A DNA stretch of 64,000 nt from Mobula birostris. Lineage: Eukaryota. Every line of letters begins with the position of its first letter. The stretch's first letter is position 1. The position numbers and the translations under genes were made by a program. The stretch lies in NCBI RefSeq assembly GCF_030028105.1, contig NC_092398.1:28552424-28616423 (forward strand). The letters are read 5' to 3'. The notes below the pieces were generated by a model that worked only from the letters and a program-made list of their open reading frames with translations, was not told the DNA's origin and ran no database searches. Positions 9,486 to 64,000 of this stretch are shown one piece after another.

Positions 9486-9558
9486 ATGAGTGTTTGCTGC
9501 AGGTTGGCCTTCGCGGCTCTCCTAGCTGAAGTGGTCTCTGTCGCGGCCATCCAGAGCG
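9486..9558 (+). CDS. MHC beta-type chain (candidate W-category WB), exon 1: leader
   Basis: caaagATG start, MSVCCRLAFAALLAEVVSVAAIQS, then G|gtaagt donor; 73 nt, phase 1, joins in frame to 11370. Confidence 0.85.
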
Positions 9559-11369: not shown

Positions 11370-11642
11370 ATATGCACCTCTTTCACGTCCAGTGTGAGTG
11401 TCTCTTCCGTGGCCTTGAAGTGGACGACATACGCTTACGTTACGCCTATGATGGTGTTACTATCATGTACTACAACATGGAAATTAAGAGGTATGTTGCA
11501 GCCCAGCCCATGGCGCAGGCTGAGGTAGACAGGCGGAACTCGGAGCACGACTATGTTACATTGGTGCCTCACCGAATTGAGAGCATCTGCAATGAGATCA
11601 AACAGGCGGTCAGATCAAGCAACATCACCCTGGAAAACATGG
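11370..11642 (+). CDS. Candidate WB exon 2: membrane-distal beta1 (class I alpha2-like) domain
   Basis: ttcttttag acceptor, G|gtaaga donor, 273 nt, phase 1/1. DMHLFHVQCEC...RYAYDG...YVAAQPMAQAEVDRRNS...ICNEIK...NIT. Cys pair at domain positions 11 and 74, as in MHC beta1/alpha2 domains. Confidence 0.92.
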
Positions 11643-19917: not shown

Positions 19918-20365
19918 GGCCCAAGGGTGTACGGTCTGTTACACAGTTTACTAACTCCTGCAAAGCCAGCAAGCAAGACGTTTGACGAAATTACAATTTT
20001 ACAAAATCACTTGAGCCTTAAACCACTGGTAATAGCTGAGAGATTTAGATTTTACAAAAGGACCCAGTCAAAAGATGAAAGCCTTTCTGAATACATTGCA
20101 GAACTGCACAAACTTTCCCAGTACTGTGACTTTAGAGAGGGACTTTCTGATGCATCAAGGGTCAGGCTTGTATGTGGCAGGCATGGTCAAAGCACCCAAA
20201 TGGGGCTACTGGCAGAAATGGACCTACCCTCAGGACAGGTATTGACCATTGCGATACCTTTAGAGACCGCAGCAAAGGAGTTTAGAATGTAAAATGCTTA
20301 AAATGTCCTTGAAATGTGCAGAAAGCCAGAATTGTTATCAATGTGGCAAATCCTCCCATGATACA

Positions 20366-21700
20366 CACACAAAATGCTGGAGGAGCTCAGCAGCCCAGGC
20401 AGTAACTACAGAAAAGAATACAGTCGATGAGGCGTCAGAGGAAGAAAGTGGAGGGAGGGCAGGAAGACATACAAGGTGATAGGTGAAACTGGGCTGGTTG
20501 GGGTGGGGGGGAATGAAACAGAAGGTGATAGATGAAACCGGAAGTGAGGTGGGGTGGTGAAGTAAGGAGCTGGGAAGTTGGTTGGTGGAGGAGGTACAGG
20601 ACTGGAGAAAGGGAAATCTGACGGGAGAGGACAGAAGACCATGGAAGAAAGAAAAGAGGGAGGAGCACCAGAGGGAGGTGATAAGCAGGTAAGGAGGTGA
20701 GATGGGAAAGGGAAATGGGAATGGAAAATAGTGGTGAGGAAGTCTGAGAAATCGATATTCATGCCATCAGGTTGGAGGCTACCCAGATGGAATATAAGGT
20801 GTTCCCCCTCACTGTAACAGTAGAGGAGGCCATGGAATGACATGATGGACAGGGAAGTGGAGTTAAAAATGGGTGGCCACTGGGAAATCCTGGCTTTTTC
20901 TGGCAGAGGGAGGTGCTTGGCAAAGCGGTCTCCCAACCTGCGGCAGGTCTCACCAATGTAAAGGAGGCCACACCGGGAGAACTGCATACGGTAGATTGAC
21001 CCCAAAAGACAGAGGTGAAGTGTTGCCTCATCTGCAAGGACTGTTTGGGACCTTGGGTGGTAGGGAGGGAGGAGGTGTAGGGGCGGGTGTAGCACTCATT
21101 CCACTTGCAAGGATAAGTGCCAGGTGGGAGATCAGTGGGGAGGGGCAAATGGACAAAAGAGTTGCATAGGAAATGATCCCTGCGAAAGCAGAAAGTGGGT
21201 GGGGGGAGGGAAAGAGGTGCTTGTTGGTGGGATCCCGTTGGAGATGGCGGAAGTTATGGTGAATTACGTGCTGGATATGGAGGCTGGTGGGGTGGTAGGT
21301 GAGGACAAGAGGAACCTATCCCTGGTAGGGTGGGGTGAGGGCAGATGTGTGCAAAATGGTGGAGGAAAGGAAGCCCCTTATTTTGAAGAAGGAGGTCACC
21401 TTTGTTCTGGGATAAAAAGCTTCATCCCGAGAGCAGATGTGGCGGAGAAGAGGAACTGAGAGAAGGGGAAGGCATTTTTACAAGTAACAGGGTGGGAAGA
21501 GGGATTGTCCATGTAGCTGTCAAGAGTCAGGGGGTTTATAGTCGGTATCAGTAGATAAGCTGTCTTAAGAGATATGGACAGAGGGAAATGGATGAGGTAA
21601 ATTCGAGGGCAGGGTGGAAGTGGAGGCGAAGTTGATGAAGTCAATGACCTCAGCACAGGTGCAGGAAGCAGTACCAATGCAGTCATCGATGTAGTGTAGG
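20366..21700 (-). mobile_element. Penelope-like element (RT C-terminus, GIY-YIG endonuclease, end)
   Basis: CSRCGLLYIGETCRRLGDRFAKHL is a GIY-YIG motif; NAFPFSQFL is a PLE thumb-region motif. Confidence 0.85.
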
Positions 21701-21876
21701 AAAAGTTGGGGAGTAAAAGTTTCTCTTTGCATCATCTCTGTTGTAATAACGAGACTTTTGATTTGTGTTAGGGAGAATACGTCAAGAGGAGTGTCCTTTT
21801 TTGTAAATTTTTCTGGAACTTCTGAGAAAATTAAAGAAATTTGGCCTGTCCCCTAAAACCCTCACTAATCTTTATA

Positions 21877-22410
21877 GATGCACCGTAGAAAGCATTCTTC
21901 TAGGGTGCATCACAACCTGGTATGGAAGTTGTCCTGTCCAAGACCGAAAGAAGCTGCAGAAGATCGTGAACACGGCGCAGCACATCACGCAAACCAATCT
22001 TCCGTCCTTGGACTCACTTTACACCGCACGCTGTCGGAGCAGTGCTGCCAAGATAATCAAGGACACAACCCACCCAGCCAACAAACTTTTCATCCCTCTT
22101 CCCTCCGGGAGAAGGCTCAGGAGCTTGAAGACTCGTACGGCCAGATTTGGGAACAGCTTCTTTCTAACTGTGATAAGACTGCTGAACGGATCCTGACCCG
22201 GATCTGGGCCATACCCCCCAAATATCCGGACCCGCCTCTCGTTTTTTTTTGCACTACCTTACTTTCCATTTTTCTGTTTTCTATTTATGATTTATAATTT
22301 AAATTTTTGATATTTACTATCGATTTGTAATTCAGGGAGCGGGAAGCGCAGAATCAAATATCGCCGTGATGATTGTACGTTCTAGTATCAATTGTTTGGC
22401 GACAATAAAA
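21877..22410 (+). mobile_element. Rex1/Babar-type LINE 3' end
   Basis: Near-identical to 54280-54830 (ESILLGCITTWYGSC...RFGNSFF). Confidence 0.75.
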
Positions 22411-22419
22411 TATAAAGTA

Positions 22420-23898
22420 TACTTCCTTTTCCAAGGGTAAAGGGGACAATCCATGATTAGTCATCCTCTTGAATTCGATCTTGCAACTGTGTCCTCCAAG
22501 AAACAGGGCCCATCTCTGCATTTGTGCTGCTGCTGGTGGAACACCCTCGATGATCAGTAACCAGGGTAAACCCTCTCCCATACAAATGTTGAAATGTTTC
22601 ACACCTCAAAGCAGATTCAAGGCCCCTCTGTCAATCTGTGTGCAATTTTTCTCTGCACCTATACCAAAAGGCAAGGCACCACAGGCAAGATTCACTGGAC
22701 TACGTGGATTGTAATGTGTGACTACAGTGTCTGACGCTACCATTTCCTTTAGCTTTTTGAAAGCAACCAGACACTGTTTCCTGCAGGAATGAGTTGGAAG
22801 GGTGGAACACAATAGCCAGGTTTGGCAGGAACCAGTTACTGTAGTTGACGAATCCTGAAAGGACGGAAGCTGTGACACATCCTTTCACCTTGGGGCATTC
22901 TCCACTGCTTCAATTTTCTCAGCACACTTGTGCAATCTTAGAGTGTCAGTGCTTGACTGCAGTAAGTGATGCTTGGTTTAAAAAATTCGTGCTTGTCGCA
23001 CCGTGCTCTGAGCCCATAATCTTCTAATCTTTTTAACACTCTCTTCAGGATTTGGACATGTTCCTGTTATACTTACCGGTAACAATGATGTCATCCAGGT
23101 AACACCGAGTGCTTGGAAAACCTTGCAGTATCTGGTTCATAGCTCTCTGCCAGAGTGCAGCTGCAGATGGCACTCCAAAAATAAGCCTATTATAGTGATA
23201 AAGCCCTTTGTGAGAGTTTATGCTGAGAAAGACTTTGGAGTCATCTTCTATCTCTGTCTGCAGGTAGGCCTCAGCTAAGTCCACTTTGCTGAAGTGTTTT
23301 CCTCTAGAAGGGTTTGTAAAGATATCCTCCATCCTAGGCAGAGGGTATTGATCTACTTTCAGTTCTTGGTTGATGGTGACCTTAAAATCACCACAGATCC
23401 TGACAGACCCATTATTCTTGTCTACTCGGACCACTAGCGTTGCCATGGGCTCCACTCAACCTTGGAAGGAATTCCTTCAGCATCCATGTGATCCAGTTCA
23501 CTGGTGCTTCATCACGGATGGTAGAAGCAAGTGGACGGGCCTTGCAAAACTTGGGCGTGACATTTTCATTTAACACCATTTTACCCTTGATATGTTTGAG
23601 TTTTCCAATCCCATCCTTGTCACCAATGTTATGCTTTGTATCTTCAAAGCCTTAAACTAATTGAAAGAAAGACATGCGCGTCTAACTTCGAGTTTACTTC
23701 AATCAAGGCACGCGTGAACCATGTGGTAGCGTGATTGCGCATGCAGTTAGCGTATTTATACATGAAACAGTCTGGTTTCCTCAGTCTAAGCAAGACAATC
23801 TCCGGCCCCGTCAAATGTCTGCGACTGAGTCACGAGCCCACCCCGTAACTTCCTGTTCATGGGGGGGTGGATGCTGTGTAATTCATTACCCTGTCACA
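22420..23898 (-). mobile_element. Internally deleted Gypsy element: LTR, tRNA-Ser-type PBS, RT and RNase H remnants
   Basis: LTR TGTGACA...ATAACA (23898..23627) with TATAAA; PBS TGGTGACAAGGATGGGAT (23625..23608). Followed directly by PKFCKARP, RICGDFKVTIN, YPLPR, CYLDDII and RMQRWALFL. Confidence 0.85.
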
Positions 23899-26408
23899 AA
23901 TGAGAGCCACAAGATAACAGACAGTACAGAGTATACTTTATATAGACTGTGTATTTATCATATCATTCCTGCTTTTACTATATGTTAGTGTTATTTATTT
24001 TTGATTTTATGTGTTATTTGGTATGATTTGGTAGGTTATTTTTTGGGTCTGGGAACACTCAAAAGTTTTTCCCATATAAATTAATGGTAATTGCTTCTTC
24101 ACTTCACACCATTTTGGCACAGAAGGTTTCATAGGAACGCTCTACCTTAGCGGGGGAAATACGGGACAAGGGCGGTCCCATATGGGACAAACCAATTTAG
24201 CCCAATATACGAGATGTCCCGGTAAATACGGGATGGTATTTGACCCTATGTTCAGGTTCAACAGTGCGTGACAGGGAATGAGGAAAGGTGCAGCTGACTC
24301 ATATCGTTTCCTCATGGCCTGGTAGCACATGCTTTGTGGCCCGGTACTGGTCCGTGGCCCGGTGGTTGGGGACCGCTGCTATAGCCCATCCACTTCAAGG
24401 TTCAACATGTTGTGCGTTCAGAGATGCTCCTCTGCACACCACTGTTGTTACATGTGGTTATTTGAGTTACTGTTGCCTTCCTGTCAGCTTGAACCAGTCT
24501 GACCATTCTCCTCTGCCCTCTCTCACTAACAAGGCATCTTCACCAACAGAACTGCCGCTCTCTGGATGTTTTTTGTTTTTCACACCAATCTCTGTAGACC
24601 GTTGAACATGAAAATCCCAAGAGACCCAGCAGTTTCTGAGGTACTCAAGCCACCCCGTCTGGCACCAACAATCATTCCACGGTCAAAGTCACTTAAAGCA
24701 TTAACAGAATGCAGAATAAAGTGTTACAGTCACAAGGACACTGCCGAGCAGGGAAACAATAAGGTGCAAAGCCACAATGAGGTAGATTGTGAGGTCAAGA
24801 GTCCATCTTATCATACTAGGGATCTGGTCATTAGTCTTAGCGCAATGGGATAGAGTACCTGATGGGAGGGGAAGATTATGTTGGCTACTTCACCAAGGCA
24901 GTTTGAGTATCAAGTCTTCTGCCATTGGGGAGGAGCTGCAGGAGCTGAGGATATAAATGAATACCTCCAGATGTCACAGAGATACGATGAGTGGAAAACT
25001 TGCATTTAAAACAGAAAATTGTTGGGATTTTCATGGAAATAAAACTCACCGAACGTTCCCGAGATGTCGGAGTCCAGCTTTGCATTCTGTGAAGGAAGAA
25101 CGAATGAGATTAAATATTGAGATTACTGTGATTTAAAAAAAACATGAAGCATTTCACAATGTGTTTGGTGGAGAAGATGCTGAACAAGGATTCTCAGGTG
25201 CGGAGTGCCGATTAAAAGTTCACGGTCAAGGGAGGAATGTTGTCCAAGTTCCCTAGCAGATTCTGTTGTTACTCACAATGCTTTCAGGAATTTGGTTTCA
25301 AGCTGGTTTTTCATGTGAAAGATGATATCGGGAACCATAGAAAGCTCTCTCTCTTGAGAGAAAGTCTGTCAATTTAGTCCACATTCCATCAGTCTCAATC
25401 ACATTCCATCAGTTTCATCCATATTCCAGCAGTCTAATCGAAATTCTCTTAGCCTACTTCATGTTCTATCAATCTCGTCTAGTCTGCATATAGTCAGTCT
25501 GATCTAAATTCCATTAGCCTGGTCCACACTTCATGAGAATCAGATGAATCAGGTTTGTTATCACCGGCATGTGACGTGAAATTTGTTAACTTAGCAGCAG
25601 CAGTTTAATACAATACATAATCCAGCAGCGAGGGAGAAAAAATAATAATAAATAAAAATAAAACATAACAAACAAACAAGTATATCAATTATGTATATTG
25701 AATAGATTATTTAAAAAATGTGAAAAAACAGAAATACTGTGTATTAAAAAAAAGTGAGGTAGTGTCCAAAGCTTCAATGTCAATCTAGGAATTGGATGGC
25801 AGAGGGGAAGAAGCTGTTCCTGAATCACTGAGTGTGTGCCTTCAGGCTTCTGTCTCTCCTACCTGATAGTAACAGTGAGAAAAGCACATGCTCTGGGTGC
25901 TGGAGGTCTTTAATAATGGACGCTGCCTTTCTGAGACACAGCTTCCTAAAGATGTCCTGGATACCTTGTAGGCTAGTGCCCAAGATGGAGCTGACTAGAT
26001 TTACAACCTTCTGTAGCTTCTTTCAGTCCTGTGCAGTAGCCCCTCCATACCAGACAGTGATGCAGCCTGACAGAATGCTTTCTCTGGTACAACTGTAGAA
26101 GTTCTTGAGTGTATTTGTTGACATGCCAAATCACTTCAAACTCCAAATTCTATCAGTCTGGTCCACGTACCATCAAGCTAGAATATGTTCCATCAATCAG
26201 TCACCACTGATTAACAGAAACCCTTTCTCCAGTCCTGCCGAAGGGTTTCGGCCCGAAATGTCAACTGTACTTTTTTCCACAGATGCTGCCTGGCCTGCTG
26301 AGTTCCTCCAGCATTTCGTATGGGTTGCTCGTATTTCTAGCATCTGCAGATTTTCTCTTGTTTGTGATTCAATAACTTGCAGTCTTCTGCTCTCCAATTT
26401 CTTCACAG

Positions 26409-26678
26409 CTCCTACCCATACCAGAGCCTTCATGCAGAAGAAACGGGGTCAAATGTACCTGGTGTGCACGGCCAGGAACTTCTTCCCCCGGGACATTAAA
26501 GTGCGGTGGGTCAGAAACGGGGAAGTCACTGACAATGGATCAGACACGACCAACGTTGTCCCTCAAAGCAATGGAGCCTTTCAAGTTAGGAGCGTCCGCC
26601 CCCTGGATGGAGACAGCTGGGGGTACGTCTGTCAGGTGGAACACGAGGCAGTCGATGGGAAGTTGCAGATACCTCTTG
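26409..26678 (+). CDS. Candidate WB exon 3: C1-set Ig domain (beta2, class I alpha3-like)
   Basis: tttcttcacag acceptor, G|gtaaga donor, 270 nt, phase 1/1. LVCTARNFFPRDIKVRW...VVPQSNGAFQVRS...YVCQVEH are MHC C1-set motifs. Confidence 0.95.
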
Positions 26679-40487: not shown

Positions 40488-42168
40488 GGTAAAAAAATCT
40501 GCGAATTGTATCTAGTATTTCAGCTCTGATGTTTATATTAGAGAGAGAAAAAAAATCCCAAGTTTGGCCAGAAGGTGAACAAACTGGCGGAAATGGGTCT
40601 CACTAAAAGTTAGCTCAGAATTTTCCAAACAATTTTGTGCCGATTTTTAGTCTGCTCCACGATTAATCTAACACTTCCTTCCTGCCTAGCCTTCAACTTT
40701 TTTAAAATCCAGCTGCCTATTTATACCTCTATCAGCTTCAAGTTTGTTCACTCCCAAAGCAATTTTCAGAATCAGAATCAGGTTTATTATCACTGGCATG
40801 AAATTTGTTAATTTAGCAGCAGCAGTTCAATGCAGTACATAATATAGAAGAAAATAATAATAATAATAAATAAACCAATTACAGGATATCTATACTGAAC
40901 AGATTAAAAATCGTGAAAAGCAGAAATAATATTTAAAAAAAGTGAGGTAGTCTTCACGGGTTCAATGTCCGTTTATGAATCGGGGAAGAAGCTGTTCCTG
41001 AATCGCTGTGTGTGTGCCTTCAGGCTTCTGTCTCTCCTACCTGATGGTAACGATGAGAAGAGGGCATGCCTGCGTGGTGGGGGTCCTTAATAATGGACGC
41101 TGCCTTTCTGAGACAAGGCTCTTTGAAGATGTCCTGGGTACTTCGTAGGCTCATACCCAAGATGGAGCTGACTAAATTTACAACCCTCTGCAGCTTCTTT
41201 CGGACCTGTGCAGTAGCGCCCCCCCCCCACACCCCCCAGATGCAGCCTGTCAGAATATTCTCCACTGTACATCTATAGCAGTTTTTGAGTGTATTTGTTG
41301 ACATACCAAATCTCTTCAAACTCCAAATGAAGTATAGTCACTGTCTTGCCTTATTCATAGCTGCATTGATATGTCGGGACCAGGTTAGGTCCTCAGAGTT
41401 GGTTTAAAAGTAAGCCACATCTTCCCTGTAAAGCTGTGGCTGCCACCATTCAAACCATGCTCTCGTCTCACCCCTACCATTGGGCAGGGGGTATAGGAGC
41501 CCTGAGTCCCTCACTACCAGGTTCAAGAACAGTTATTACACTTCAACCAGTGTGGATAACTTCACTCTCCTCAACACGGAACTGACTCCACAACGTACAC
41601 ACTCATCTTCCAGGTCTCTGGAACTCATGTCCTCAGTACTCTTCATTCATTTCCATTTGCACAATAGTTGTTTATGTGTAGTTTTTCATAAATTCTACTA
41701 TTTCCCTATTTTCCCTTATATGTCTGTAGGAAGGGTCTTTCCTGTGCTGTACTGTTCTATGTTCCATGTGTTTGGGTGCCTTTGATTGGCTTTTTACCAA
41801 GTTTGGCGCATCATTGTGGCCAAACCCTGTGCAGTACTGTTCTACAAAAATGAATGTCAGTGCAGTTTATGGTGAGATATATAGACCTCAACAATGAACA
41901 TACTTTGAGCTCAGAGGAATATAAACTCCACTCTTATCGACTCTTGTCTTGTGGACTCCTGACCTGATCCTATACATGGAAAATCAGCTTGAAACCAAAC
42001 TTTTTTGTCCAGTTACTCTTTAAATACCTCACAGCAACTTGGACAACGTTCTTGCATTGACCGTGAACTCTTAAACAACACCTTCGTCTGAGAATTGTGA
42101 AGCATTTCATGTTTTTTTTAACATCAGAGTTATCTCAGTACTTAATCTCATCTGCTCTTCCTTCACAG

Positions 42169-43228: not shown

Positions 43229-45689
43229 ATATGTATATTCAGTAATTAAAAAAAAGATACTGAGACAGCTTTCTTTGACCGACCCATGACAACTGTTGAC
43301 TAATAATGTGAGGCCAATGTTCCTACTCTTGGACCGGTCTCTTTGTGAGCGACGGGGTGGGGGTCCTTAAACAGAGCTGGTTCAGTACATGGGTAGGACG
43401 GGTTCTGTGGGACATGTACCAAATGGCACTAACTTAGTGGGCACTATGGTTGGTACAGATATGTTGGGCCGAAGAGCCTATTTCTGTGCTGTATTAATCC
43501 ATGACCTCTATTAGTTCATTAGATCAATAAAAAGAAATGCATGAAAGCTTTCCGAGTATGAATTTCTCATCTTATATCATGGAACCATGGAACTTGATGG
43601 TCGAAGGGTAATACCTGTTCCTGAACCTGGTGGTGTGGGACTTAAGGCTCCTGCACCTCCTTCCCGAAGGTGGTAGTGAGAAGAGAGCATGGCCAAGATG
43701 GTAGGGGTCGCTGATGCTCGATGCTCACTGGGTGGTGAAGGTGGTGTTTGGCATGCTGACCTCTAGCAGTCAGAGAACTGTGTAGAGGAGCAGGGGTATG
43801 ACGTGCATTTGTCCAGTGATCACGACCAGGATTCGAACCCCACCACCGTCGGCAAGTTCACCCATGACCACGTGGGTTTCCTCCGAGCACTCCAGTTTCC
43901 TGCCACACTCCAAACACGCTGCAGACTTGGGTTCAAGAGCCACAGGGTGATGTTGCAGCTCTATTAAACCCTGGTTAGACCAAACTTGGAACAGTGTATT
44001 CAGCTGTGATCTCCTCATTACAGGAAGGATGTGGAAGCTTTAGAAGGGGTTCAGGTTAGATTTGCTGCCTGGATTAGACAGAGTGCCTTACTAGGATAGG
44101 ATGAGCGAACTAGGGCTATTTTCTTTAGAGTGAAGAAGAATTAGAGGTGGTGTTAAAGATGATAAGCAGTATTGATTGGACAGGAAAATAACCATATTCG
44201 ATGGATTTCATTAAGATTCCCCACCTCAGGCCGGCTGGTGGCGCAATGACATTAGCGCCAGACCTCAGAACGGAGGTTCCCGGATTTGAACCCAGTCCAA
44301 GCCGCTCCCCAGTACGCTTTCCATCCATGCTGGGTTGAGTGATGCTGGGATAGACAACTCCCTATCTCACCGAGGGTTTGAGACCCATCGGCTACCCTCA
44401 CCTGGTTTAGCCGTTGCCTGGGGTGTGGCTGCGGTCACCTGCAAACAGCTATGAGGAGCCACAGGTGAGAGCTGAGTGCCAGGTGGGGACCAAAGGTGGA
44501 CTAATGACCTTGAAAAGGACGCAACATGTTCCCCCACCAGAGGTGATACCCCTCCCTGACACCCCATACACTCCAAAAGCTGTATAAAGTCACTCTTAAG
44601 TTGAATTACTGTTTTCACATGCACCAAAGCACATAACAAACGTTCATGCAGATCACATGCAGATTGAGGTAGAACAAGGTAAAATAAAAAAAGAATTCAG
44701 AATAAAATGTCACAGCGACAGAGAATGTTTTGCGGGATAGGGAATAAGGTTGAGATGGACTACTCTCCAGGGATCTGAATAAAGGCGGCTGTAGAGATCG
44801 TGGAGACATTAATCATGATCTTTCAAGAATCACTAGATTTATGAATGGTTCTGGAGTACTGGAAAATTGCAAATGTCACTCCACTCTTCAAGAAGGGAGA
44901 GAGGCAAAAGAAAGGAAATGGTAGGCCAGTTAGTCTGAATGCAGTGGTTGGGAAAATGTTGGAGCTAATTGTCAAGGAAGAGATTTTGTGGTACTTGGAG
45001 GCCGTGATAAAATAAGCCATGGTTTCCTTAAGGAGATATCTTGCCTGACAAACCTGTTGGAATTCATTGAGGAAATAACAGGCAGGGTAGACAAAGGAGA
45101 GTCAGTGGGTTTTGTGTACTTCGATCTTCAGAAGGCCTTTGACAAGTTGCCGCACATAAAGCTGCTTAACAAGAGCCTGTGGTTTTACAGGAAAGATACT
45201 CATGTAACGCTCGGTTCGGCGAGCAGCTTACTGTACCGAAAGACACCTCCGGTCCGGCCCAAACTTGAGAAACCTTGTTTGTGTGGGTGCTGCATGGTGT
45301 TCCCCTGTTACAAATTAGTACCACAAAATAACAAACGGTACACAATATGCAATTAAACGATTGAGCTTCATAATTCTTAATTTGACTATGGGGTTAGTAA
45401 AGAAACAAAAATAAGAGAAAGGACCCATTCTCATGAACCAGTTTATTTTGCTGCATTGGAGCTCACGGTTTTCCTGTTGGTTCGTTCTCCCTTGATTTTC
45501 TCCCCGGGCGTTGACTCCCGACCCCAATCCAAGTCTATGACCTCCCCGTTCTGGCATCTTCTCTCTCCATCTTCCGCCGAACAAAAAAACCGCGAGTCCC
45601 TTCTCTCAGCCCCACAAGAAAGAAGCAACATGCCTCTCATTGATACAAAATACTCTGCAGATGCTGGGGTCAAAGCAACACTCACAACA

Positions 45690-50049: not shown

Positions 50050-53000
50050 AAATGACAAAGGGTGTGTCAATACAAAGTTACATACCTGGAGTATGGTTTT
50101 ATTCCATCCCATCAGATCAGCGATGCCTCATGTCTCTTATTTATAATACTGTACTGTCTAATGAAGCATAAAACCATCAAGATTGCAAGAACATTTCAGT
50201 AAAAGACACCTGGAAAAAGCTACTTATGGTATTACTCAGTTCCAGAAGATGAAAGACGCATTGGAAAAAGCATTGCACACTTGAATCATTTGCCAAGAAA
50301 GCTAAAAATGACCATGCTCGTGGTCTCATTGCTTCTGATAACATTTCCAAAATGATAGAAAAGTGTGGAAAATCACATACAGTTTGTGAAAGATTAATAA
50401 TGCCTGCTGTATCAGAAGTGCTCACCACTGTTCTCAAAATGATGCCAGTATTTTAAAATCAATTCCTTTGAGTAATAACTCTCCAGCTCATCATAGTGAT
50501 GAAATGAGTGAAGACATTGAGTATCAGCTAGGCACAGAGCTACAAAAACATAATTTGGGATACAACTGGATTTGTGAACTGTGCGAGACAATGAGGCATT
50601 GCTAATAGCACATGTACAGTTTATCAAAAATGGAAAAGTTTATGATGAGATTCTCTTCTTTAAAAAGTTAAAAACAAATATCAATTGAGAATCAATCTAT
50701 GAAGAGCTCAAAATGTGTTTGAGGATAAAAATATCCTGATTAGGAATATGATTTCTTGTGCAAAAGGCGGAACACCATATTTGATGGGTTGCCATGCTGG
50801 GTCAGTGGCATTTATGTAAAAAAAATCCATGTCTGTTTACAATCCATTGTCTAAATTAATGGTCGCCAACCAGTCAATCACGATCGACCAGTCAATCTTT
50901 GAGACTTTCCCAGTGGATCCCAAACAAAAAAGAAAAATAAATACACAAATACTGTTGTAATGTGAGCATTATAAAAATAAGTAATACTAATTAGGATAAT
51001 GGTAATATAGCAATGCTCCCACTATGGAAAGCTGTTTGTAAAGAGAAGTTGTTTCTGGGGTTGTGGGGTTTTACTTCCGTTCTTTCTGCCTGGTGCGCAT
51101 TTCCGTTCGGTGTCTGAGTTGCAGCAAAATGCTGCGACCATTTGTTGGCTTGCTGCCTGAAATAAAGACTTTTCTGTCACCAAGAAACGAGGAGCACGAG
51201 GAACTGTCAGATGATGCATGGCTACTGGATTTAGGGTTTCTGACAGACCTAACGACTAAATTAAGTGCAGTTAACAACATTAAGACCAACACCTGCCCCA
51301 CACGGTAAGCGCAGTAAATGCGTTCAAGGCCAAGCTCGGTGTTTGTATTTCAAATTGAAAGAACGGGAGGCTGACACACTTTCCCAACTTGGAGAAAGTG
51401 TTATAGGCCATCAAGGAAAAAAATGCTTTTCGCCCTGAGCAGTACTGTGCTTACCTAGACAAACTGGGAATAGAGTTCGATTGGTGTTTTGGGGAGTTAA
51501 ACACCATGAAAGATATTGTTGCATTTATTTCAAACCTATTTCTGCCGATTGATATAGAACAGGTAGTAGCCAAATTCCAGCAAGTATCTGGTGTGCCAAA
51601 TGATATTGAAATGGAAATAATTGATTTGCAAAATGACATCAAGCTTAAAGCAAAATCAAGGGATGGTGACTTTTGGGGGCTTGTCAACAGGGAGAAGTTT
51701 CCTCATCTCACCACATGTGCACTAAAAGTCAGTGCCTACTTTGGGTCAATTTATCTGTGTGAATTTGCATTTTCACAGATGAAAATTATTAAATCTAAGT
51801 ACAGGAGCTGTCTTTCTGACAGACACTTCACAGACTGTCTCAGACTGGCTGTCTGTAGTTATGAGCCAAAATTCAGGGAACTAGCAGAAAGTATTCAGCC
51901 CCAGTCATCACACTGAGTGCAACAGTCAATTTTTATTCATTTATTTTTCGTGTTGAAATAAAATTAAATAATGAAACTTAGAATTAAAGGTATGAAGTAT
52001 TGTAATATTCTTAAAGAAAGACAGCTATGGCCTATTTGATATGCGAGTTACAGTGTTTTCTTGGTTGAAATAATTTGAAAGTTTGACAAAAACATTTTAT
52101 GTAATTCAAATACAATTAGCCCAAATAAAAGACCTCAAGTTGGAAGTACAATCTGAGCTGCTTTCTCTCTAAACGATTTAGTAGGTATATCTTACCTTTC
52201 ACTAAGGCCGAGGCAGGGGACCTTGGGCTTAAAAAGGTTGGCAACCACTAGTCTAAATCATCGTCAACATCTTGGAGCCAAAGACCTCAACCAGTGACTT
52301 TTTCAAGCATGACTCTTGTAATATCTGCTAGCAACAAAATTGAAGTTCATCTTTTAAATAGCAGAATATTTTGCCAGTTATGCCAAGATAATGACGAAAA
52401 ATTTAAATGCTTATTTCTTTACACTGAAGTGCATTGGTTGTCAAAGGTCTGTTACTTAAAATGTTTCTTTGATCTTTTTGCCAGTGTGGCTGAATTTTTG
52501 CTCAAAGTAGACAACAGCTTGGGGAACCTCTACATGGAGATTTGGCATACCTAGCCAATCTATATGGCGAAATGAACTATTCTAAATATAAATGAGAATT
52601 TCAATTTAATCCAGGCAAAAAGTGTAGTGTCCGCTTTTATCAGAAAGTTGGAAATATATGAGTAAAATATTAGGAGAAAAATGTTCTCATCGTTTCCCTG
52701 CATGGAAAGTATGGCACTCCCTTTCACAGATGATGATTTGCAAAAGTACTGCTTACACCTGCAGTCACTGAAGAAGGATTTTCTGAATGAATTTGAACGA
52801 TCTATAAATTCAGGACTGGGCGTTTAACCCATTTCTTTGCAAGGTGGAAGAACAGCAAGAGAGCTCGCAAGAAGAAATGATCAAAATTCAGTGTGATGAA
52901 AAAGCAAAAATGCTTTTCAAAACTGTCGGCTTTTGTGATATTTGGCTACACTGTCACAGAAAGTTTCATGGTCTTTGGAGAAGAGCCAAACTGCTCTTCA

Positions 53001-53859: not shown

Positions 53860-54830
53860 ATTGAAGTGTACACAAGTCACTGTACACCCATGATTGTGTA
53901 GCCAAGTTTCCATCGAACTCAATGTATAAGTTTGCTGATGACACAACAATTGTAGGCCGTATCTCGGGTAATGATGAGTTTGAGTACAGAGAGGAAATTA
54001 AGAACCTGGTGGCATGGTGCAAAGACAATAACCTATCCCTCAATGTCAGCAAGATGGAGGAATTGGTTGTTGACTTCAGAAGGAGTAGTGGACCGCACGA
54101 CCCTATTTACATCGGTGGTGCTCAAGTGGAACAGGTCAAAAGCTTTAAGTTCCTCGGGGTCAATATCACAAATGACTTGACTTGGTCCAACCAAGCAGAG
54201 TCCACTGCCAAGAAGGCCCACCAGTGCCTTTACTTCCTGAGAAAGCTAAAGAAATTTGGCCTGTCTGCTAAAACCCTCACTAATTTTTATAGGTGCACCG
54301 TGGAAAGCATTCTTCCAGGGTGCATCACAACCTGGTATGGAAGTTGTCCTGTCCATGACCAGAAGAAGCTACAGAAGATCGTGAACACAACTCAGCACAT
54401 CACACAAACCAATCTTCTGTCCTTGGACTCACTTTACACCGTACGCTGTTGGAGCCATGTTGCCAGCATAATCAAGGGCACGACCCACCCAGCCAACACA
54501 CTTTTCGTCCCTCTTCCCTCCAGGAGAAGGCTCAGGAGCTTGAAGACTCGTACAGCCGGATTTGGGAACAGCTTCTTTCCAACTGTGATAAGACTGCTGA
54601 ACGGATCCTGACCTGGATCTGGGCCGTACCCTCCAAATATCCGGACCTGCCTCTTGGTTTTTTTGCAGTACCTTAGTTTCCCTTCTCTATTTTCTATTTA
54701 TGATTTATAATTTAAGTTTTTAATATTTACTATCGATTTGTACTCCAGGGAGCGTGAAGCACAGAATTAAATATCGCTGTGATGATTGTATGCTTGAGTA
54801 TCAATTGTTTGTTGACAATAAAATACAGTG
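53860..54830 (+). mobile_element. Rex1/Babar-type LINE 3' part (open 229-aa RT C-terminus)
   Basis: KFADDTTIVGRIS...WCKDNNLSLNVSK...VVDFRR...FKFLGVNI. Related antisense copies at ~25550-26150, 40760-41400 and 60410-61030. Confidence 0.85.
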
Positions 54831-55239: not shown

Positions 55240-56510
55240 CCTTTTAATATGACACACCAAATCATCACTGGTGCAGCCAATTAGTTTTAGAAAACAAGTC
55301 TGTTTTCGGAGACCTGTGTGCAGTCAGGGTGTTTCAATTGATAGCAGTAAAGATATACCTGTATCTGGAAGGCCCAACTGCTCGTGAGTCAGTGTCCAGG
55401 TAAAAACTACGCCATGAAACAAAAGAACTCTCCAAGCAACTCCGCCAAAAGCACAAGTCAGGAGATGGATACAAGAAAAATTTCAAGTTACTGAATATCC
55501 CTTGGAGTGCAGTTGTTGATCATCAAGAAATGGAGAGAATATGGCACAGCTGTAAATCTTCCCAGAGCAGGCCGTCCTCAAAAACTGAGTGACCGTGGAA
55601 GAAGGGGACCAGTGAGGGAGGCTGCCAAGAGATCTACGACAACTCTGGAGGGGTTACAAGCTTTAGTGGCTGAGATGGGAGAGACTGTGCATACAACGAC
55701 TGTTGCCCGGGTGCTTCACCAGTCACTGCTTTATGGGACAGCAGCAAAGAGAAATCCACTGTTGAAAAAAACTCACATGAAACCTTGGCTAGACCTTGCC
55801 AGAAGGCATGTGGGAGACTCTGAAGTCATCTGGAAAAAGGTTCTATGGTCTGATGAATCCAAAAGTGAGCTTTTTGGCCATCAGACTAAACACTATGTTT
55901 GGCATAAGCCAAACACTGAACATCCTCAAAAACACACCATCCCTCCTGTGAAACATGCTGTGGGGATGCTTCACAGCAGCAAGCCTTGGAAGGCTTGTGA
56001 AGGTAGAGGGTAAAATGAACGCAGCAAAATACAGGGAAATCGTGGAGGAAAACCTGATGCATTCTGCAAGAGAACTGCGATCTGGGAGAAGATTTGTTTT
56101 CCAGCAAGACAATGACTCCAAGCATAAAGCCGAAGCTACAGGGGAGTGGCTTGAGAACAACAAAGTTAATGTCCTGGAGTGGCCAAGTCAGAGTCCAGCC
56201 CTCAATCCAATTGAGAATTTGCGGCTGGGCTTGAAAAGAGCTGTGAGCAGTTTTGTAAAGAAGAATGAGGAAAATTTGCAGTATCCAGATGTGCAAAGCT
56301 GATAGAGACCTATCCACACAGACTCAAGGCTGTAATTGCTGCCAAAGGTGCATCTACTAAATACTGACTTGAAGGAGGTGAATACTTATGCAATCAAGTA
56401 TTTTGTGTTTTATATTTGTAATTAATTTGGATCACTTTGTTGAGAACCAAATTAAATCCACTGTGATTTAATAGAAATTGAAACTTCTGGGGTGGGGGGT
56501 GTGAATACTC
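55240..56510 (+). mobile_element. Tc1 transposon, frameshifted transposase
   Basis: PRAGRPQKLS, VLWSDESK, FQQDNDSKH and WPSQSPALNPIEN motifs; termini eroded. Confidence 0.92.
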
Positions 56511-56559: not shown

Positions 56560-59285
56560 GGATGTTTGAAAGCAAAGGACGGTACCATTATCATAGAAAA
56601 AGATGAGATTATGAACAAATGGACTGAGTAAATTCAGGAATTGTTTGAAAACAATAAGGAGAAATTAAGAAAAACATTGAAGGTCCAAGTATTTTAAAAT
56701 CTGAAGTTCGTAATGCAATAAATAAGATGAAGAAAGGAAAGGCAGCAGGTCCTGATGAATTAGTAATAGAACAAATTATTGCCCTTGAAGATTATGGAAT
56801 TGAAAATCTTACTGATTTAATCAATTACATTTATGAGACTGGAATAATACCAGGAGAGATGAAAAAATCAGTATTTATCACTCTTCCTAAGAGAATGTGA
56901 ATTACATAGGACTATAAGTTTAATGAGTCATATTACCAAGATACTTCGAAGAATTTTGATGACAAGAGCTAAAAATAAGATCCAAGCTGAAATAGGCAAA
57001 GAAAAATGTGGTTTTGTGAAAGACAAAGGTACAAGAAACGCAATATTGATGTTAAGGCTGCTATCTGTCATGGTCCGGTCTGTGAAGTCTGTATTCCGGT
57101 TCACGGTCCAGTCCATCAACCCTTGCTCCAGGTTTTCCTATCTACCCCGTTTCTGTTCTTGTTGAGCTAAGTGAGGCAGCTGATACTCATTGGGGCTGGA
57201 TTGTTCTTGTCCTTACTCATTGTATCCCTTCCTCTGCCTTCTGTTTCCTTGCCTGAAGCCCTGCCTTGTCTTGCCAGTAACTCTTGCCTCGCCTGAAGTT
57301 CTCTTCTTGCCCTGCTTTGCCAGTAGCCTTGCCTGGTCTTGCTGTTTGGTCCTGGAGCCATCCCGTACCTAGCTCCCTTCCTGTCCCTTGCCTCCGCCCA
57401 GGTAAGCCAGGCCATCTTGCCGTTACCTGGGGTTGGTTCTGTCCCTTCCTGTCCCTTGCCTCTGTCGGGTGGTGAACCGCGCCCTGCCCAGGAGCAGCCA
57501 AGCCTCACCTCAAGTCTCAAGTCTCCTGCCTCCTGCCAAGCCTCGCCTCAAGTCTCCTGCCTCCAGCCTTGTCTCAAGCCTCCATCCTCCAGCCTCCTGC
57601 CTCCAACCTCCTGCCTCCAGCCTCGCCTCACCTCCAGTCTCCAGCCTCCTGCCAAGCCTTGCCTCGTTTCTTGCCTAGCCTCGAGCCTGAAGACTCCAGC
57701 CTCTAGCCTCTTGTCAAGCGAAGTCTCTAGCCTCTTGCCAAGCCAAGCCAAGTCTCTAGCCTCTAGCCTCTTGCCAAGCCAAGCCAAGTCTCTAGCCTCT
57801 AGCTTCAAGCCTGAAGACTCCAGCCTCCTGCCTCCTGCCAAACCTTGCCTCTAATCTCTAGCCTCAAGCCTGAAGACTTCAGCCTCGTCCTGCCTGCCTG
57901 CCAAGCCTCGTCCTTGCCTAGTTCTGGGGACCGAGTCAGAGGCAAGACCCAGGTACTGGGTCTTTGTCCAGTCTCTGGCTCGGAGTCCAAGCCCGGGCTC
58001 CTAGTTCCCTTGTTCAGTCCTGTTCCAGGTTCCTGGTTTTCCTGTCCATGTCCTTGCCGTCGCCCTGTATCCTAGTCCTGTCCCTAGTACTTCAGTGTCT
58101 GTGTCTTGCCCTTGGGTCCGCTCCCAGCCACCCGCCTTATGACACTACCAGAACGAGCTATTCAAGTGCAAAAAGATATGTTTGTTTGTTTTATCGACTA
58201 CACAAAAGCATTTGATAACGTGAAGTACGATAAGTTACTTGAAATACTACAGAAAACTCTAGATCTAGATTTGAAAGACCTCCACCTAATCAGAAATCTG
58301 TACCGGGAACAAACTGCTGCTGTAAGAATAGATGGAGAAGTGAGTCAGTTTATGAAAATCAAGAGAGGCGTTAGACAAGAGTGTGTTTTCTCCCCTGATT
58401 TATTTAATGTGTACAGTGAAACAATATTACAAAAAATAAGAGACATCTTGGGAATCAAAGTTGGCGGTGAAAACATCAATAATTTCAGATATGCAGATGA
58501 CGCTGTGTTAATTTCAAGTACGGAGGAAGAACTACAAAACTTAATTGATATAGTTGTTGAAGAAAGTGCAAAAATGGGTCTATCTATCAATTGCAAAAAG
58601 ACATAATGTATGGTGATATCCAAAAAGAAGGACAATCCTATCTGCAGGCTGAGTTTAAATGGGGAAGACATAAAACAAGTAAAGGACTTTTGCTACTTAG
58701 GAAGCTGGGTGACATCAGATAGCAGGTGCGACATGGACATCAAAAGAAGAATAGGGATGGCAAAAGACACCTTTATGAGAACAAAGAGTATACTGACCAA
58801 TACTAAACTAGGCATGACAACCAGCCTCAGAGTACTGAAATGTTACGTTTATCCAGTTATACTTTATACTTTATGTTACATGGCTCAGAATGTTGGACAA
58901 TATCTAGTAACACGAGGAAATGAATTGTAGCAGCACAGATGTGGTTTTTGAGGAGGAATAAGGATATCATGGACAAAACGAATATCTAACGAGGATGTCA
59001 TGAACAGAGCAAACACAAAAAGAGAAATAATGTATGAGATCATGAAAAGGCAATGTGACTTCATTGGACATGTGATTAGGAAAGAGGAGTTAGAATGCAC
59101 GGTAATTATGGGAAAGATTGAAGGGAAGAAAGCAAGATGAAGACAAAGACAAATGATGATGGAGACAGCAGCCAGAGAATTGGAAGTGAATGCCAATGAA
59201 TTGATCCACTTGACCCGAAATGGGAGTGTGTGGGCCATGACAATCAAAGCTCATGCTGGGCATGGCACCTGATGATGATGATGAT
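56560..59285 (+). mobile_element. RTE-clade LINE interrupted at 57066-58144
   Basis: KAAGPD, FIDYTKAFD, GVRQECVFSP, RYADD and a (GAT)n tail. The reading frame LLS|ERAI is split by the insertion. Confidence 0.9.
57066..58144. mobile_element. TG...CA insertion (LTR-like) carrying an internal degenerate tandem array
   Basis: Termini TGTCA...TGACA and a 5-bp TSD CTATC/CTACC. Internal short repeats of (c)aagcc/tctag/ctcctg at ~57495-57915. Confidence 0.75.
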
Positions 59286-59532
59286 CTAACAATATTATGT
59301 ATCGCAATGTACTGCTGCTGCAAAACAACATTCATGACCTATGTCGGTGATACTAAACCTGATTCAGAAATAATAGTACTATCACTGGCTTGAATTTATA
59401 ATAAATGTATTTTTGTTAAAGAAAAAAGGGGATACTGCTCCCAGCACTTATAAAATTGGCTGCAGTCCAAGGTTAAAATAACTTCTTCTGTTCAATGTGA
59501 GCTTGTATTCAATCATCCAGTTAACCACTTAC

Positions 59533-59790
59533 AGTTCAGGGTCAGAACATTCTGGTAAACGCTCTCTGCAATGAAAGGGACGAAGGCTTGGTATGGTTGA
59601 CTTCAATGACAGCCCGGGGGTTGCTGTGGTTCAGGTCTCTGGTGAAAGCTTCCAAAAGTGAAACGCTGGCCCCAAATTTCCTTGCAGAGAAATCAAAGTA
59701 GGTGACATCTTTGCAGTCGTAACCAAATCACAAGTCCGTTTTCGAGAACCACGGAGCTGTGCTGGAGTAGATTGTCCAGCTGATGTACAT
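59533..59790 (-). pseudogene. Disrupted MHC membrane-distal domain exon (alpha1/beta1 fold) of a further paralog
   Basis: 258 nt between tttatctgag and |gtaagtg, phase 1/1. The middle frame reads FGYDCKDVTYFDFSARKFGASVSLLEAFTRDLN, matching the MHC YDG-x-D-x-x-Y-F-D strand motif. The terminal frame (DVH... and ...YQAFVPFIAESVYQNVLTLN) differs from the middle frame, so no single frame is open. Confidence 0.7.
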
Positions 59791-62239
59791 CTCAGATAAA
59801 CACTAATTAGAAGGATAGTTTGAGTCATCTCAAAGCCATTCTGAGTTGGGAATGAGTTACTTAAGACAAGGTGATTTCTATCTCCTGAGTTGCAGACTGC
59901 ATCTATCAGTTACAGTTTCAATCTCTTTCCTTTTATGTTAGACATCACAACATCAATGCCTCAACAAGCTCTATAGAACCATACAGCATAGAAACAGGCC
60001 TTTCAGCCCAACTGGTGCATGCTGGCCAAGATTCACATCCAAACCAATACTACTTGTCCATATTTGGCACACATCATTTACCCTGTTTGCACTCCCTGCC
60101 TTCCCCCCTTTTCCCTCTCCCCCACCTTGAAATCTTTCTTATCCATGTACTTTTCAAATGCTTCTCTTCCGCCTGCCTCAGTCAATTCCTCTCGTAGTTT
60201 GTCGTATATAGACACACATAGCTCTCCAACTGGGACAAGGCCTCTTCTCATTACAATCACTGGGATGAGGTTCAGGAGGCCGAAGAGCCAGCTTCTGCCA
60301 TCAGATTTCGGAACAGTTCATGAATCCACGAATACTACTTCGCTGTTCTTTTGCTTTTGCACTAATTTATGGTCTGTGCACTGTACTGCCGCTGTAAAAC
60401 TACAAATGAACAGAATCAGGTTTATTTTCACTGGCGTCTATTAGCAGCGGCAATAACTGACTTTGGAGAAAGAAAATTAAATAACCAAGTAAATCAATTA
60501 CAGTACATTGAATAGATTAAAAGATATATTAAAAAAGTGAGGTAGTGTTCATGTTTTCAAGGTCCATTTAGGAATCTTATGGCAGAGTGGAAGAAGCTGT
60601 TCCTAAATCGCTGAGTGTGTGCCTTCAGGCTTCTGTACCTCCTTCCTGGCGGTAACAATGAGAAAAGATCATGCCCTGGGTGATGGGGGTCCTTAATAAT
60701 GGACACTGCCTTTCTGAGGTACCGCTCCTTGAAGATGTCCTGGGTACTACGGAGGCTAGCACCCAAGATGGAGCCGACTAATTCTACAACTTTCTGTAGC
60801 TTCTTTTGGTCCTGTACCTGCCCCCTACCATACCTGACAGTGATGCAGCCTGTCAGAATGCTCTCCACAGTACATCTATAGAAGTTTTGAAGAGTTTTAG
60901 GTGACAAACCAAATCTCTTCAAAATCCTAATGAAATATCGCCACTGTGTCGGCTTTTTGATACCTGGATCAATATGTTGGAACCAGGTTAGGTCCTCAGA
61001 GATTTTGACACCCAGGACTTGAAATTGCTCACTCTCTCATTGTGTCCTAAACGAAACTTATAATTTAAACTGATTCTGATACTGACCACCCTCTGGGTGA
61101 AAGGGTTGCTCCTCAGGCTCATAGTAAATCTCTCTCCTCTCATTTTAAACCTACATTCTAGTTCTCGATTCCCCATCGCTGGGGAAAAGACTGCACATTC
61201 ACCCTAAATATGCTGTTAATGATTTTGGAAGGTGGAAATGAGGGGGATCAAACTGAGCAAGGTTAGGAAGGAGGAGGAGGAGGAGGGAGAAACAATCTCC
61301 ATAAATTCCCTCCATTTAAGTGACACCCAACACCATCCCCTCCCATTTATCCCTCCCACCCACCTTTCCCACTAATCCCCCAGGCAGTTCGATAACCATC
61401 TCCCATCATAAACCAATTCCTCCTTCCAGTTATTCCCTCTCTCCTCCTGCACCCACCTCCTGAGAATCAGTCTGCACTGCCTCCTCACACACACCCCTTC
61501 AGCACAAATCTCTGAAACCACCCCCTTAAACTCAACACCTCCCCTCATCACTCACTCCACATTTACCTGCTCACACTTTGCACAGACCTGGTTAGCTTCA
61601 ACCAGTCCTCCAACCCATCAATCCTCCCATCTGCAATCTCCTTCCAACCCCTGCATCACCCAGCCACACAACTCCCAGGCTCTGCATCTGTCTCATTCTT
61701 TCTACCCTCTGCACCATTCTTCACCCCACCCTCTGATCTACCTGGTCAACACCTAATGCACCCACCCTTGTCAGTCCACGCCCTCTCCCCCTTCCCTGCG
61801 CACTCACACATCACGCCCATTCTCTGTAGCCACCTTTCTGAATGCATCTGCTCCACACCCTATCCCTTCTCAGTCTAAACCGCGCAGATGTGCGGCCGCG
61901 CAGTTACTGAAATGCTCCCGCTCACATAGCCATCGTAGCTGTGCAGCTGGAATTTTCTTTAGTGCTGACGGCGAACGTGGATTCAGTTTTATGAATTAAA
62001 TCAAATGTAAATCCAGGAGCAGACTAGAAGTGGAACATGTAGATGATCTGATGAGGGCTCAGAAGTATCTTTCATCTGGATGTGAAATTAATCTGGATGA
62101 CGTTTACAGGCAAAAGATTTGTAATAAAGACAGACAAGAGAAAGTTTATGAAACTAGCAAGATTTCCTTTGTTGTGCTGTATTTAATTATGCCCTTCAAT
62201 TAATACATAAAATAAAATGTATGTGATTCTAAAAATGCA

Positions 62240-62855
62240 AACACGAGAAAATCTGCAGATGATGGAAATTCAAGCAACACACATCAAAGTTGCTGGTGAA
62301 CGCAGCAGGCCAGGCAGCATCTATAGGAAGAGGTACAGTTGACGTTTCGGGCCGAGACCCTTCATCAGGACTAACAGGAAAAAAAGAGATAGTAAGAGAT
62401 TTGAAAGTGGGAGGAGGAGGGGGAGGGGGAGATCCGAAATGATAGGAGAAGACAGGAGGGGGAGGGATGAAGCCTAGAGCTGGGAGGTTGATTGGCAAAA
62501 GGGATACAAGGCTGGAGAAGGGGGAGTATCATGGGACGGAAGCCCTTGAAAGAAAGCAGAAAAGGGAAGGGAGCACCAGAGGAAGATGAAGAACAAGCGC
62601 CTGTAGTCTCCCTTCTCTAGCCTTGTATCCCTTTTGCCAATCAACCTCCCAGCTCTTGGCTTCATCCCTCCCCCTCCTGTCTTCTCCTATCATTTCGGGT
62701 CTCCCCCTCCCCTCCCCCTCCCACTTTCAAATCTCTTACTACCTCTTTTTTCCGTTAGTCCTGAAGAACGGTCTCGACCCGAAACGTCGACTCTACCGCT
62801 TCCTATAGATGCTGCCTGGCCTGCTGTGTTCCACCAGCATTTTGTGTGTGTTAAA
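62240..62855. mobile_element. Inverted pair of Penelope ends, each with a hammerhead motif
   Basis: 62240-62590 is the reverse complement of 62600-62855. Hammerhead cores at 62337-62372(-) and 62757-62792(+). Confidence 0.85.
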
Positions 62856-63104
62856 TGTATGTGATTGTTCAGTTTTCATTCTAAATATTCATAGTATGTT
62901 ATTTACAAAAAAAAATTAAAGAGCTACGCAGTTTTCAGGACATGTAAAAATTTCCTGCTCAGAACAATGGTTGGTCCGTGCAGCTGTAAAAGATATTAGA
63001 GCGAGCTTTGCATCCAATTCACCCACCTGCCACCTCCATCCAGTGTACCTGAGTGCCCCCAATACCCTCTGCGGCCATCCAGCTGCCCACATCTCTGCAC
63101 CCAC

Positions 63105-64000
63105 CCAACCATCCCCATCTTCTGCAACTGTCTATCCCTCACCCCTCCCATCCTCTACAACTGTCTATCCCTCACCCCCATCCTCTACAACTGTCTATCC
63201 CTCACCCCCATCCTCTACAACTGTCTATCCCTCACCCCCATCCTCTACAACTGTCTATCCCTCATCCCTCCCATCCTCTACAACTGTCTATCCCTCACCC
63301 CTCCCATCCTCTACAACTGTCTATCCCTCACCCCTCCCATCCTCTACAACTGTCTATCCCTCACCCCTCCCATCCTCTACAACTGTCTATCCCTCACCCC
63401 TCCCATCCTCTACAACTGTCTATCCCTCACCCCTCCCATCCTCTACAACTGTCTATCCCTCACCCCTCCCATCCTCTACAACTGTCCATCCCTCACCCCC
63501 ATCCTCTACAACTGTCTATCCCTCACCCCTCCCATCCTCTACAACTGACTATCCCTCACCCCTCCCATCCTCTGCAACTTCCTATCCCTCACCCCTCCCA
63601 TCCTCTACAACTGACTATCCCTCACCCCTCCCATCCTCTACAACTGTCTATCCCTCACCCCCATCCTCTACAACTGTCTATCCCTCACCCCTCCCATCCT
63701 CTACAACTGTCTATCCCTCACCCCTCCCATCCTCTACAACTCTCTATCCCTCACCCCTCCCATCCTCTACAACTGTCTATCCCTCACCCCTCCCATCCTC
63801 TACAACTGTCTATCCCTCACCCCTCCCATCCTCTACAACTGTCCATCCCTCACCCCCATCCTCTACAACTGTCTATCCCTCACCCCTCCCATCCTCTACA
63901 ACTGTCTATCCCTCACCCCTCCCATCCTCTACAACTGACTATCCCTCACCCCTCCCATCCTCTACAACTGTCTATCCCTCACCCCTCCCATCCTCTACAA
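63105..64000. repeat. 33/30-bp C-rich minisatellite running off the window end
   Basis: Unit ccatcctctacaactgtctatccctcacccctc (33 nt), with a 30-nt variant lacking ctc. Confidence 0.97.

Follow-up and report, generated by a model that had tools for sequence, protein, structure and literature searches.

MHC clusters often contain fragments of pseudogenes. A 258-nt minus-strand segment in the genome of the giant manta ray (Mobula birostris) raises the question of whether it is one of them and, if so, to which gene it once belonged. The segment occupies positions 59533-59790 of the 64,000-nt stretch analysed here, which we refer to as the window. An initial annotation, made from the letters of the window and their open reading frames, had proposed that it was a pseudogenised membrane-distal exon of a WA or WB gene copy and that its presence implied a tandem cluster of W-category genes. 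The reading that we favour, at a probability of roughly 0.8, is that a dead W-category beta-chain gene of the MHC, in all likelihood a member of the WB_DS1 lineage, has left its beta1 exon here, and that this gene would have been one partner of a head-to-head pair.

Anatomy of the segment and its reading frames

Read on the minus strand, the segment runs from an AG acceptor (59792-59791) to a GTAAGTG donor (59526-59532) and has the 1/1 phase of the exon for which it was originally taken. The acceptor region (59791-59815) is a moderately pyrimidine-rich tract (67% pyrimidine); 21% of random positions have an equal or better acceptor no more than 12 nt away, and the acceptor, taken alone, is weak evidence. 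The donor has a position-weight score of 6.4 bits, and 6% of positions have one as good at that distance or less. The two strands of the window together contain 21 GTAAGT, with only two of these on the minus strand of the 41-64 kb region.

Three-frame translation resolves the segment into three pieces. The frame set by the acceptor begins (D)VHQLDNLLQHSSVVLENGLV and provides an N-terminal piece of 21 codons, (D)VH...GLV (59729-59790), which beyond its D-x-H start has little similarity to any lineage. A single stray base at 59728 separates this piece from the second frame and fits the loss of 2 nt from one codon; the traceback of the WB beta1 profile alignment described below puts this first frameshift at ~59725. 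The second frame contains a 61-codon open core starting FGYDCKDVTYFDFSARKF (59727-59545), preceded by a TGA at 59730-59728, and the stop-free portion assigned to the exon reaches from F23 to T68 (59590-59727). The second break consists of two stray bases at 59588-59589 and fits a loss of 1 nt, its position being uncertain within ~59585-59600; breaking the frame near 59589 yields a reading, FVPFIAESV..., which matches WB_DS1, whereas the traceback of the Nds5L profile prefers 59558. From 59587 to 59533 the exon frame is resumed, and the last 18 codons, AFVPFIAESVYQNVLTLN, are open and stop one base short of the donor, that base being the first of a split codon. The net frame change over both breaks is zero, which restores the 1/1 phase, and the segment comprises 87 codons when both broken codons are counted, with an X at each break.

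Thus the compensating breaks between the ends and the core, and the TGA in the core frame, are as the initial annotation had described them. It had placed the two indels near 59728 and 59595; the first position is retained, and the second is moved slightly, to ~59588-59589. Its statement that the segment lacks a canonical Cys pair also holds in the three-frame translation of 59533-59790. It had further remarked that TAC and TTC codons at roughly the expected positions are each one substitution from TGC. No such explanation is needed: a Cys pair is found in none of the WB_DS1 beta1 domains that have been published, so its absence is a trait of the lineage and not a product of decay.

Resemblance to MHC membrane-distal exons

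For comparison with W-category genes, profiles were drawn from the WB_Nds5L-type proteins of five rays and the WA_DS5 proteins of seven sharks and rays, to which genomic loci from sawfish and Heptranchias were added. When the 2127 stop-to-stop fragments of the window were searched (hmmsearch) with a four-sequence WB beta1 profile, the genuine beta1 exon was recovered at 1e-53, and the core of the segment ranked second, with 9.4 bits and a window-wide E of 0.16, its alignment falling where it should in the domain. This match is borderline and not significant, since the sawfish locus gives two matches at the same level, small profiles yield a top chance match of E ~0.16, and shuffled sequence does as well in local alignment. 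A local alignment of the window that tolerates frameshifts had p ~0.17-0.2, a score reached by about one shuffled window in five. For the core, hhalign returned P 0.002, with a probability of 13% in local mode and 1% in global mode.

Because the claim concerns an exon, a test anchored on exon boundaries was used. In the window and in the sawfish and Heptranchias loci, all in-phase AG..GT segments between 243 and 300 nt long were taken from both strands, and the WB beta1 profile was aligned to each of them globally, with frameshifts allowed. The 20,151 non-genuine segments had a mean of -28.9 bits (sd 7.1); the segment at 59533-59790 scored +5.1 (z 4.8) and ranked first. Genuine WA alpha1 exons fell below it, that of Heptranchias coming next at 1.9 and that of sawfish standing at -7.1. 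Since these genuine alpha1 exons rank high against a beta1 profile, the anchored test recognises true distant MHC homologues, and the segment sits among them. When only the 217 segments with good splice signals were considered, the three genuine WB beta1 exons came first, followed by the segment and then by a WA alpha1 exon, with the background beginning at -6.6 and extending downwards.

The result was stable under variation of the test. With six sets of gap and frameshift penalties the z score of the segment ranged from 3.6 to 4.9, and positive score was contributed by all four quarters of its alignment. Sub-profiles gave z 4.2 (Nds5L only) and z 3.7 (Hypanus type). None of 8000 dinucleotide shuffles of the segment reached its score or rose above -1.6. 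The estimated per-segment p of ~2e-5 corresponds to an expected ~0.2 segments of this quality among the 10,254 of the window, and to ~0.002 among the 124 that have good splice signals. Two other weak matches in the window were rejected, one on the minus strand at 16595-16864, which is a hAT transposase remnant, and one on the same strand at 45169-45393, which is due to chance.

The comparison with alpha1 exons was less favourable. Against the alpha1 profile of WA_DS5, the WA lineage that the machine test covered, the segment reached only z 2.5 in the anchored test, a score equalled or exceeded by 29 of 2996 null segments, and in a search with the same profile it was not among the top matches. 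Thus, of the proposal that this was an exon of a WA or WB copy, the WB half stands, with z 4.2-4.8 against WB profiles pointing to a relic of beta1 type, and the WA half does not. Global alignment at the DNA level gave z 1.8-2.5 for the segment against the WB beta1 and WA alpha1 exons, compared with z 1.6 for real alpha1 against beta1 exons. The resemblances of the core to DRA and to class I chains that the initial annotation had pointed out amount only to the generic strand motif common to all MHC distal domains. On the basis of the anchored test, together with the hand alignment given below, the resemblance of the segment to an MHC membrane-distal exon of WB beta1 type is above chance.

Generic database searches and the possibility of a chance match

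The initial annotation had looked to MHC family profiles to recognise the corrected peptide, and they did not. Pfam (MHC_II_beta, MHC_I) had zero matches in the three pieces, and phmmer against the PDB with the core found none at E up to 10. However, the intact WB beta1 exon of the window itself, used as a control, also fell below the Pfam cut-off, with E 0.06 (MHC_I), and reached only E 0.03 against class I chains in the PDB. Because an intact exon barely registers, the Pfam and PDB blanks carry little weight. When the core was searched with phmmer against 1.84 billion proteins, neither an MHC protein nor a transposon or other real protein was matched; a 61-residue query against 1.8 billion sequences detects only relatives above roughly 45% identity, and this search was run without the intact-exon control. 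It returned three matches, to a tandem-repeat zinc-finger protein, a short tandem-repeat peptide and a bacterial Ig-repeat protein, all of which were rejected as artefacts of internal repeats; BLASTP of the core against the best of the three gave zero alignment. A practical warning follows for other loci: Pfam, PDB and single-sequence searches miss even intact W-category distal domains, and a lineage-specific comparison is therefore needed.

These blanks, together with the window-wide E of only 0.16 (p ~0.2), the ease with which small profiles yield chance matches at that level, as in the two from sawfish, and surroundings full of LINE, Tc1 and hAT remnants, are what might be expected if the segment were a look-alike, that is, an open stretch in transposon-rich intergenic DNA in which a Y-D...Y-F-D-type motif happens to fall between an AG and a GT. 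We consider such an origin very unlikely. The Pfam and PDB blanks lose their force once the intact exon is seen to fare little better, and a look-alike would have to account for first rank among 20,151 segments, above real alpha1 exons, for a score that none of the shuffles attained, and for an expectation of ~0.002 among segments with good splice signals. It would also have to account for an alignment with WB_DS1 at equal length and with one indel (21 of 63 residues identical), and for a position and strand that agree with those of the sawfish WB_DS1 gene, both of which are described below.

Comparison with the neighbouring WB_Nds5L gene

The window itself contains an intact WB_Nds5L gene, which lies on the plus strand and has its leader at 9486-9558, its beta1 exon (exon 2) at 11370-11642 and its Ig exon at 26409-26678. 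Exon 2 and the segment are alike in the AG/AT context of the acceptor (AG followed by AT ATG CAC in exon 2), the D-x-H start with its split D codon, the 1/1 phase, the strand motif Y-D...Y-[YF]-[ND]...[KR]-[RK]-[YF]-x-A and an Asn six codons from the exon end. They differ in length (273 against 258 nt), their protein identity is ~20%, and the three conserved Cys of exon 2 are missing from the segment. Within the window, blastn found no DNA-level match of the segment to the WB_Nds5L exon, and global DNA alignment of the two gave z 2.5; the segment was therefore not copied from this exon in recent times.

Probable assignment to the WB_DS1 lineage

Representative sequences have been published for six elasmobranch lineages, WA_DS5, WA_DS10, WA_Nds3L, WB_DS1, WB_DS3 and WB_Nds5L (PMC8713811), and the comparison of the segment with WB_DS1 and WB_DS3 was a hand count on the sequences printed in the supplementary information of Okamura et al. 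2021 (PMC8713811). The WB_DS1 beta1 domain has 86-87 codons and no Cys pair, with no Cys in banded houndshark and great white shark and a single one in dogfish (PMC8713811). For spiny dogfish, the WB_DS1-like beta1 appears there three times in consistent form (PMC8713811) and has 87 residues.

The segment and dogfish WB_DS1, both of 87 positions, were aligned by hand. From F23 to N55 the alignment is ungapped; the two agree at 11 of 33 residues (F, Y, D, F, K, F, A, L, F, L, N), and many of the other pairs are conservative. After N55 the segment has one extra residue, following which its S-N-P faces the S-N-P of dogfish. The stretch FVPFIAESVYQNVLTLN then aligns with dogfish YAPFLAETILQATQTLT (7 of 17 identical, 6 conservative), and the two exon ends are at most one residue apart. 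From F23 to the exon end, 21 of 63 residues are identical (33%) with one indel, for which the binomial P is ~1e-8 at a background of 8%; by our estimate this P would remain small once the choice of sequence and register is allowed for.

With shark and skate WB_DS1 genes the segment has in common the motifs F-[AG]-Y-D, F-[ND]-[YF]-[ST], K-F-x-A, L-N-S-N-P and [FY]-[AV]-P-F-[LI]-A-E-[ST]-[IV], and the D-A-H at the start of the catshark WB_DS1 exon resembles its D-V-H. It differs from these genes in its two frame shifts, in a C for G in the Y-D-G motif and in its diverged first 22 residues, of which only H3 is common to WB_DS1 and which are slightly nearer to WB_DS3 (D-V-x-Q). The segment most likely belongs to the WB_DS1 lineage, an assignment that we infer from the hand alignment only and that is not certain.

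The segment might also be an MHC distal-domain relic of some other lineage, either one resembling WB_DS3, a divergent subtype of WB_Nds5L or a W lineage that has yet to be sampled. The D-V-x-Q start and the Y-F-D and L-N..P-[KR]-A-[LV] stretches match banded houndshark WB_DS3 as well (PMC8713811), and the WB_Nds5L and Hypanus-type profiles reach the z 4.2 and 3.7 reported above. Nevertheless, WB_DS3 beta1 is 91 residues long, carries two N-terminal Cys and requires several gaps for ~21% identity, whereas WB_DS1 accommodates the 87 codons, the missing Cys pair and a single indel, and 33% of the last 63 residues are identical to it. In sawfish the gene at the syntenic position is of WB_DS1 type, and the WA_DS5 alpha1 profile, at z 2.5, offers no better home. 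We therefore regard an origin outside WB_DS1 as very unlikely.

The missing remainder of the gene and its repeat setting

The initial annotation had found no Ig or membrane exon to accompany the segment on the minus strand, and motif, profile and exon-anchored scans bear this out and add the leader to the missing parts. A regular expression for the C1-set Ig motif, applied to the whole window, found no minus-strand exon, the WB_Nds5L Ig exon being the only C1-set exon present. WB and WA Ig and membrane profiles, in local and exon-anchored mode, gave nothing above background on the minus strand, where these scans together show no C1-set Ig exon, intact or decayed. The WA Ig profile works across lineages, as it scores the Ig exon of WB at 43 bits, and it would have revealed that of WB_DS1 had this been intact. 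The sawfish WB_DS1 membrane exon had zero tblastn matches in the window, and no signal-peptide (leader) exon was found in 59791-64000 at either of two thresholds. Compared with the WB_DS1 genes, then, the segment stands without leader, Ig, membrane and tail exons, all of which are gone.

The place of the missing exons is taken up by repeats, and remnants of transposons crowd the region between 51 and 61 kb. Plus-strand LINE reverse transcriptase sequence is found at 53922-54611, as a fragment, and at 58106-59284, ending ~250 nt from the donor of the relic. The portion 58583-59284 is 90% identical to another plus-strand LINE fragment at 2026-2715, which indicates that this LINE family was active fairly recently. 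Further plus-strand remnants are a Tc1/mariner transposase helix-turn-helix domain (55507-56013) and a hAT dimerisation domain (51506-51916); a hAT-like open frame lies on the minus strand inside the WB intron (16274-16819). A tandem array with a unit of ~120 nt, and ~71% identity between units, occupies 57497-57921.

A repeat family of ~600 nt, which starts GAATCAGGTTTATTATCAC and has a hairpin-like 5' end, has plus-strand copies at 25545-26148, 40772-41398 and 60411-61001 and an inverted copy at 59292-59368. The copies at 59292-59368 and 60411-61001 face outward and flank a 1-kb block that contains the relic. We considered whether this block, 59369-60410, was a transposon with inverted ends and rejected the idea: the flanking copies are outward-facing starts of the family, not terminal inverted repeats. 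Also, the segment is not itself a dispersed repeat within the window, where the check raised by the initial annotation found no second copy of the 258 nt.

The state of the surroundings bears on whether the segment could be a working exon of a live WB gene, with the frame changes introduced by errors of assembly. The breaks do compensate, the length is a multiple of 3, the best path is stop-free and the splice signals are kept; moreover, 33% identity over 63 residues is within the range that we estimated by eye between skate and shark WB_DS1. But a live gene would need C1-set Ig, membrane and leader exons, none of which is on the minus strand of the window, and the place expected for its downstream exons is occupied by the LINE and other repeats. 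In addition, neither break lies in a long homopolymer, and this, with the absence of the rest of the gene, makes an assembly error at both breaks unlikely. A live exon is accordingly very unlikely, and the breaks are probably genuine.

Gene order and the origin of the relic

In great white shark, W-category genes form head-to-head pairs, WA_Nds3L/WB_DS3L, WA_DS10L/WB_DS1L and WA_DS5L/WB_Nds5L (PMC8713811). In the sawfish Pristis pectinata, a gene for a 296-aa protein (locus L001, 31824-36263, minus strand) lies tail-to-tail with WB_Nds5L, 5.5 kb downstream of it. Its membrane exon, YGYVVGVIAGIIGILIALSGGIIKWK (YGYVVG...SGGIIKWK), is of WB_DS1 type, the dogfish counterpart being YGYVVGIILGIAGIVIAVSGGIIRWK (PMC8713811). 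The position and strand of this gene relative to WB_Nds5L are the same as those of the manta relic, and it is by position and strand that the two are likened. They differ in that the sawfish gene is annotated as complete and is apparently intact, whereas the manta counterpart is one broken exon.

Under the reading that we favour, a WB_DS1-type gene would once have stood beside WB_Nds5L on the minus strand of the manta genome, as in sawfish. What is left of it would be an exon in which the splice signals, the length and roughly one residue in three are preserved, interrupted by two small frame-breaking deletions (at 59728 and near 59589); with the leader, Ig-like and membrane exons lost, no protein would be made. 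The relic points away from an alpha-chain gene placed just beyond the end of the window, and thus outside the DNA read here. It would be what remains of the original head-to-head beta partner of that gene, in the manner of the shark WA_DS10L/WB_DS1L pair.

Taken by itself, the relic is an ordinary pseudogene fragment of a family described in 2021 and matters little. Its value is in the map, where it would mark the lost partner of the neighbouring alpha-chain gene and complete the cluster. The order would be WA_DS5, pointing left, back to back with WB_Nds5L, pointing right, followed by the dead WB_DS1, pointing left, back to back with the alpha gene, pointing right, an arrangement that matches the published shark head-to-head pairs. 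The evidence thus agrees with the tandem W-category cluster first proposed, narrowed to a probable WB_DS1 member, as opposed to a duplicate of the WB_Nds5L exon nearby. This order suggests that the tail-to-tail arrangement of alpha and beta genes in rays may be two adjacent head-to-head pairs, one of which is without its beta gene.

Loss of the WB_DS1 partner raises the question of which beta chain the alpha chain uses. One could go further and propose that, with its canonical beta partner dead, the alpha chain pairs with a beta chain encoded elsewhere, for example by its tail-to-tail neighbour, that manta W pairs have been re-partnered after repeated loss of WB_DS1, and that the tail-to-tail order of rays is what remains after the death of a head-to-head partner. 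We consider this extended scenario unlikely.

Partial W-category genes in sawfish

Sawfish has a second WB_Nds5L-type copy (P0005; locus L003, CM019897.1:2298128-2331568, at 14737-23441), with Ig, membrane and tail exons. No beta1 exon for it was found within 14.7 kb upstream, and this copy is probably a partial duplicate. Partial W genes therefore do occur in W clusters. The NCBI model of P0005 has an unrelated N-terminus.

Within the intron of the sawfish WB_Nds5L gene, two weak matches to the WB beta1 profile (E 0.15 each) were seen on the minus strand of L001, at 21749-21811 and 20566-20700. They are collinear and 1.1 kb apart, and one has H-A-R-C-E-C, which may be compared with the conserved H-x-Q-C-E-C. 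These matches may represent a second antisense beta1 relic, or chance.

W-category genes in public annotation

The public manta model for the WB gene of the window (P0002) starts only in the Ig exon and is 172 aa long, even though the DNA contains an intact leader exon and an intact beta1 exon. Public names for W-category genes are misleading, among them zinc-alpha-2-glycoprotein-like, FcRn large subunit-like and class II DQ/DR beta-like. Finally, Hypanus sabinus P0004 has a second beta1 subtype, like that of great white shark WB_Nds5L, joined to an Ig domain of Nds5L type.
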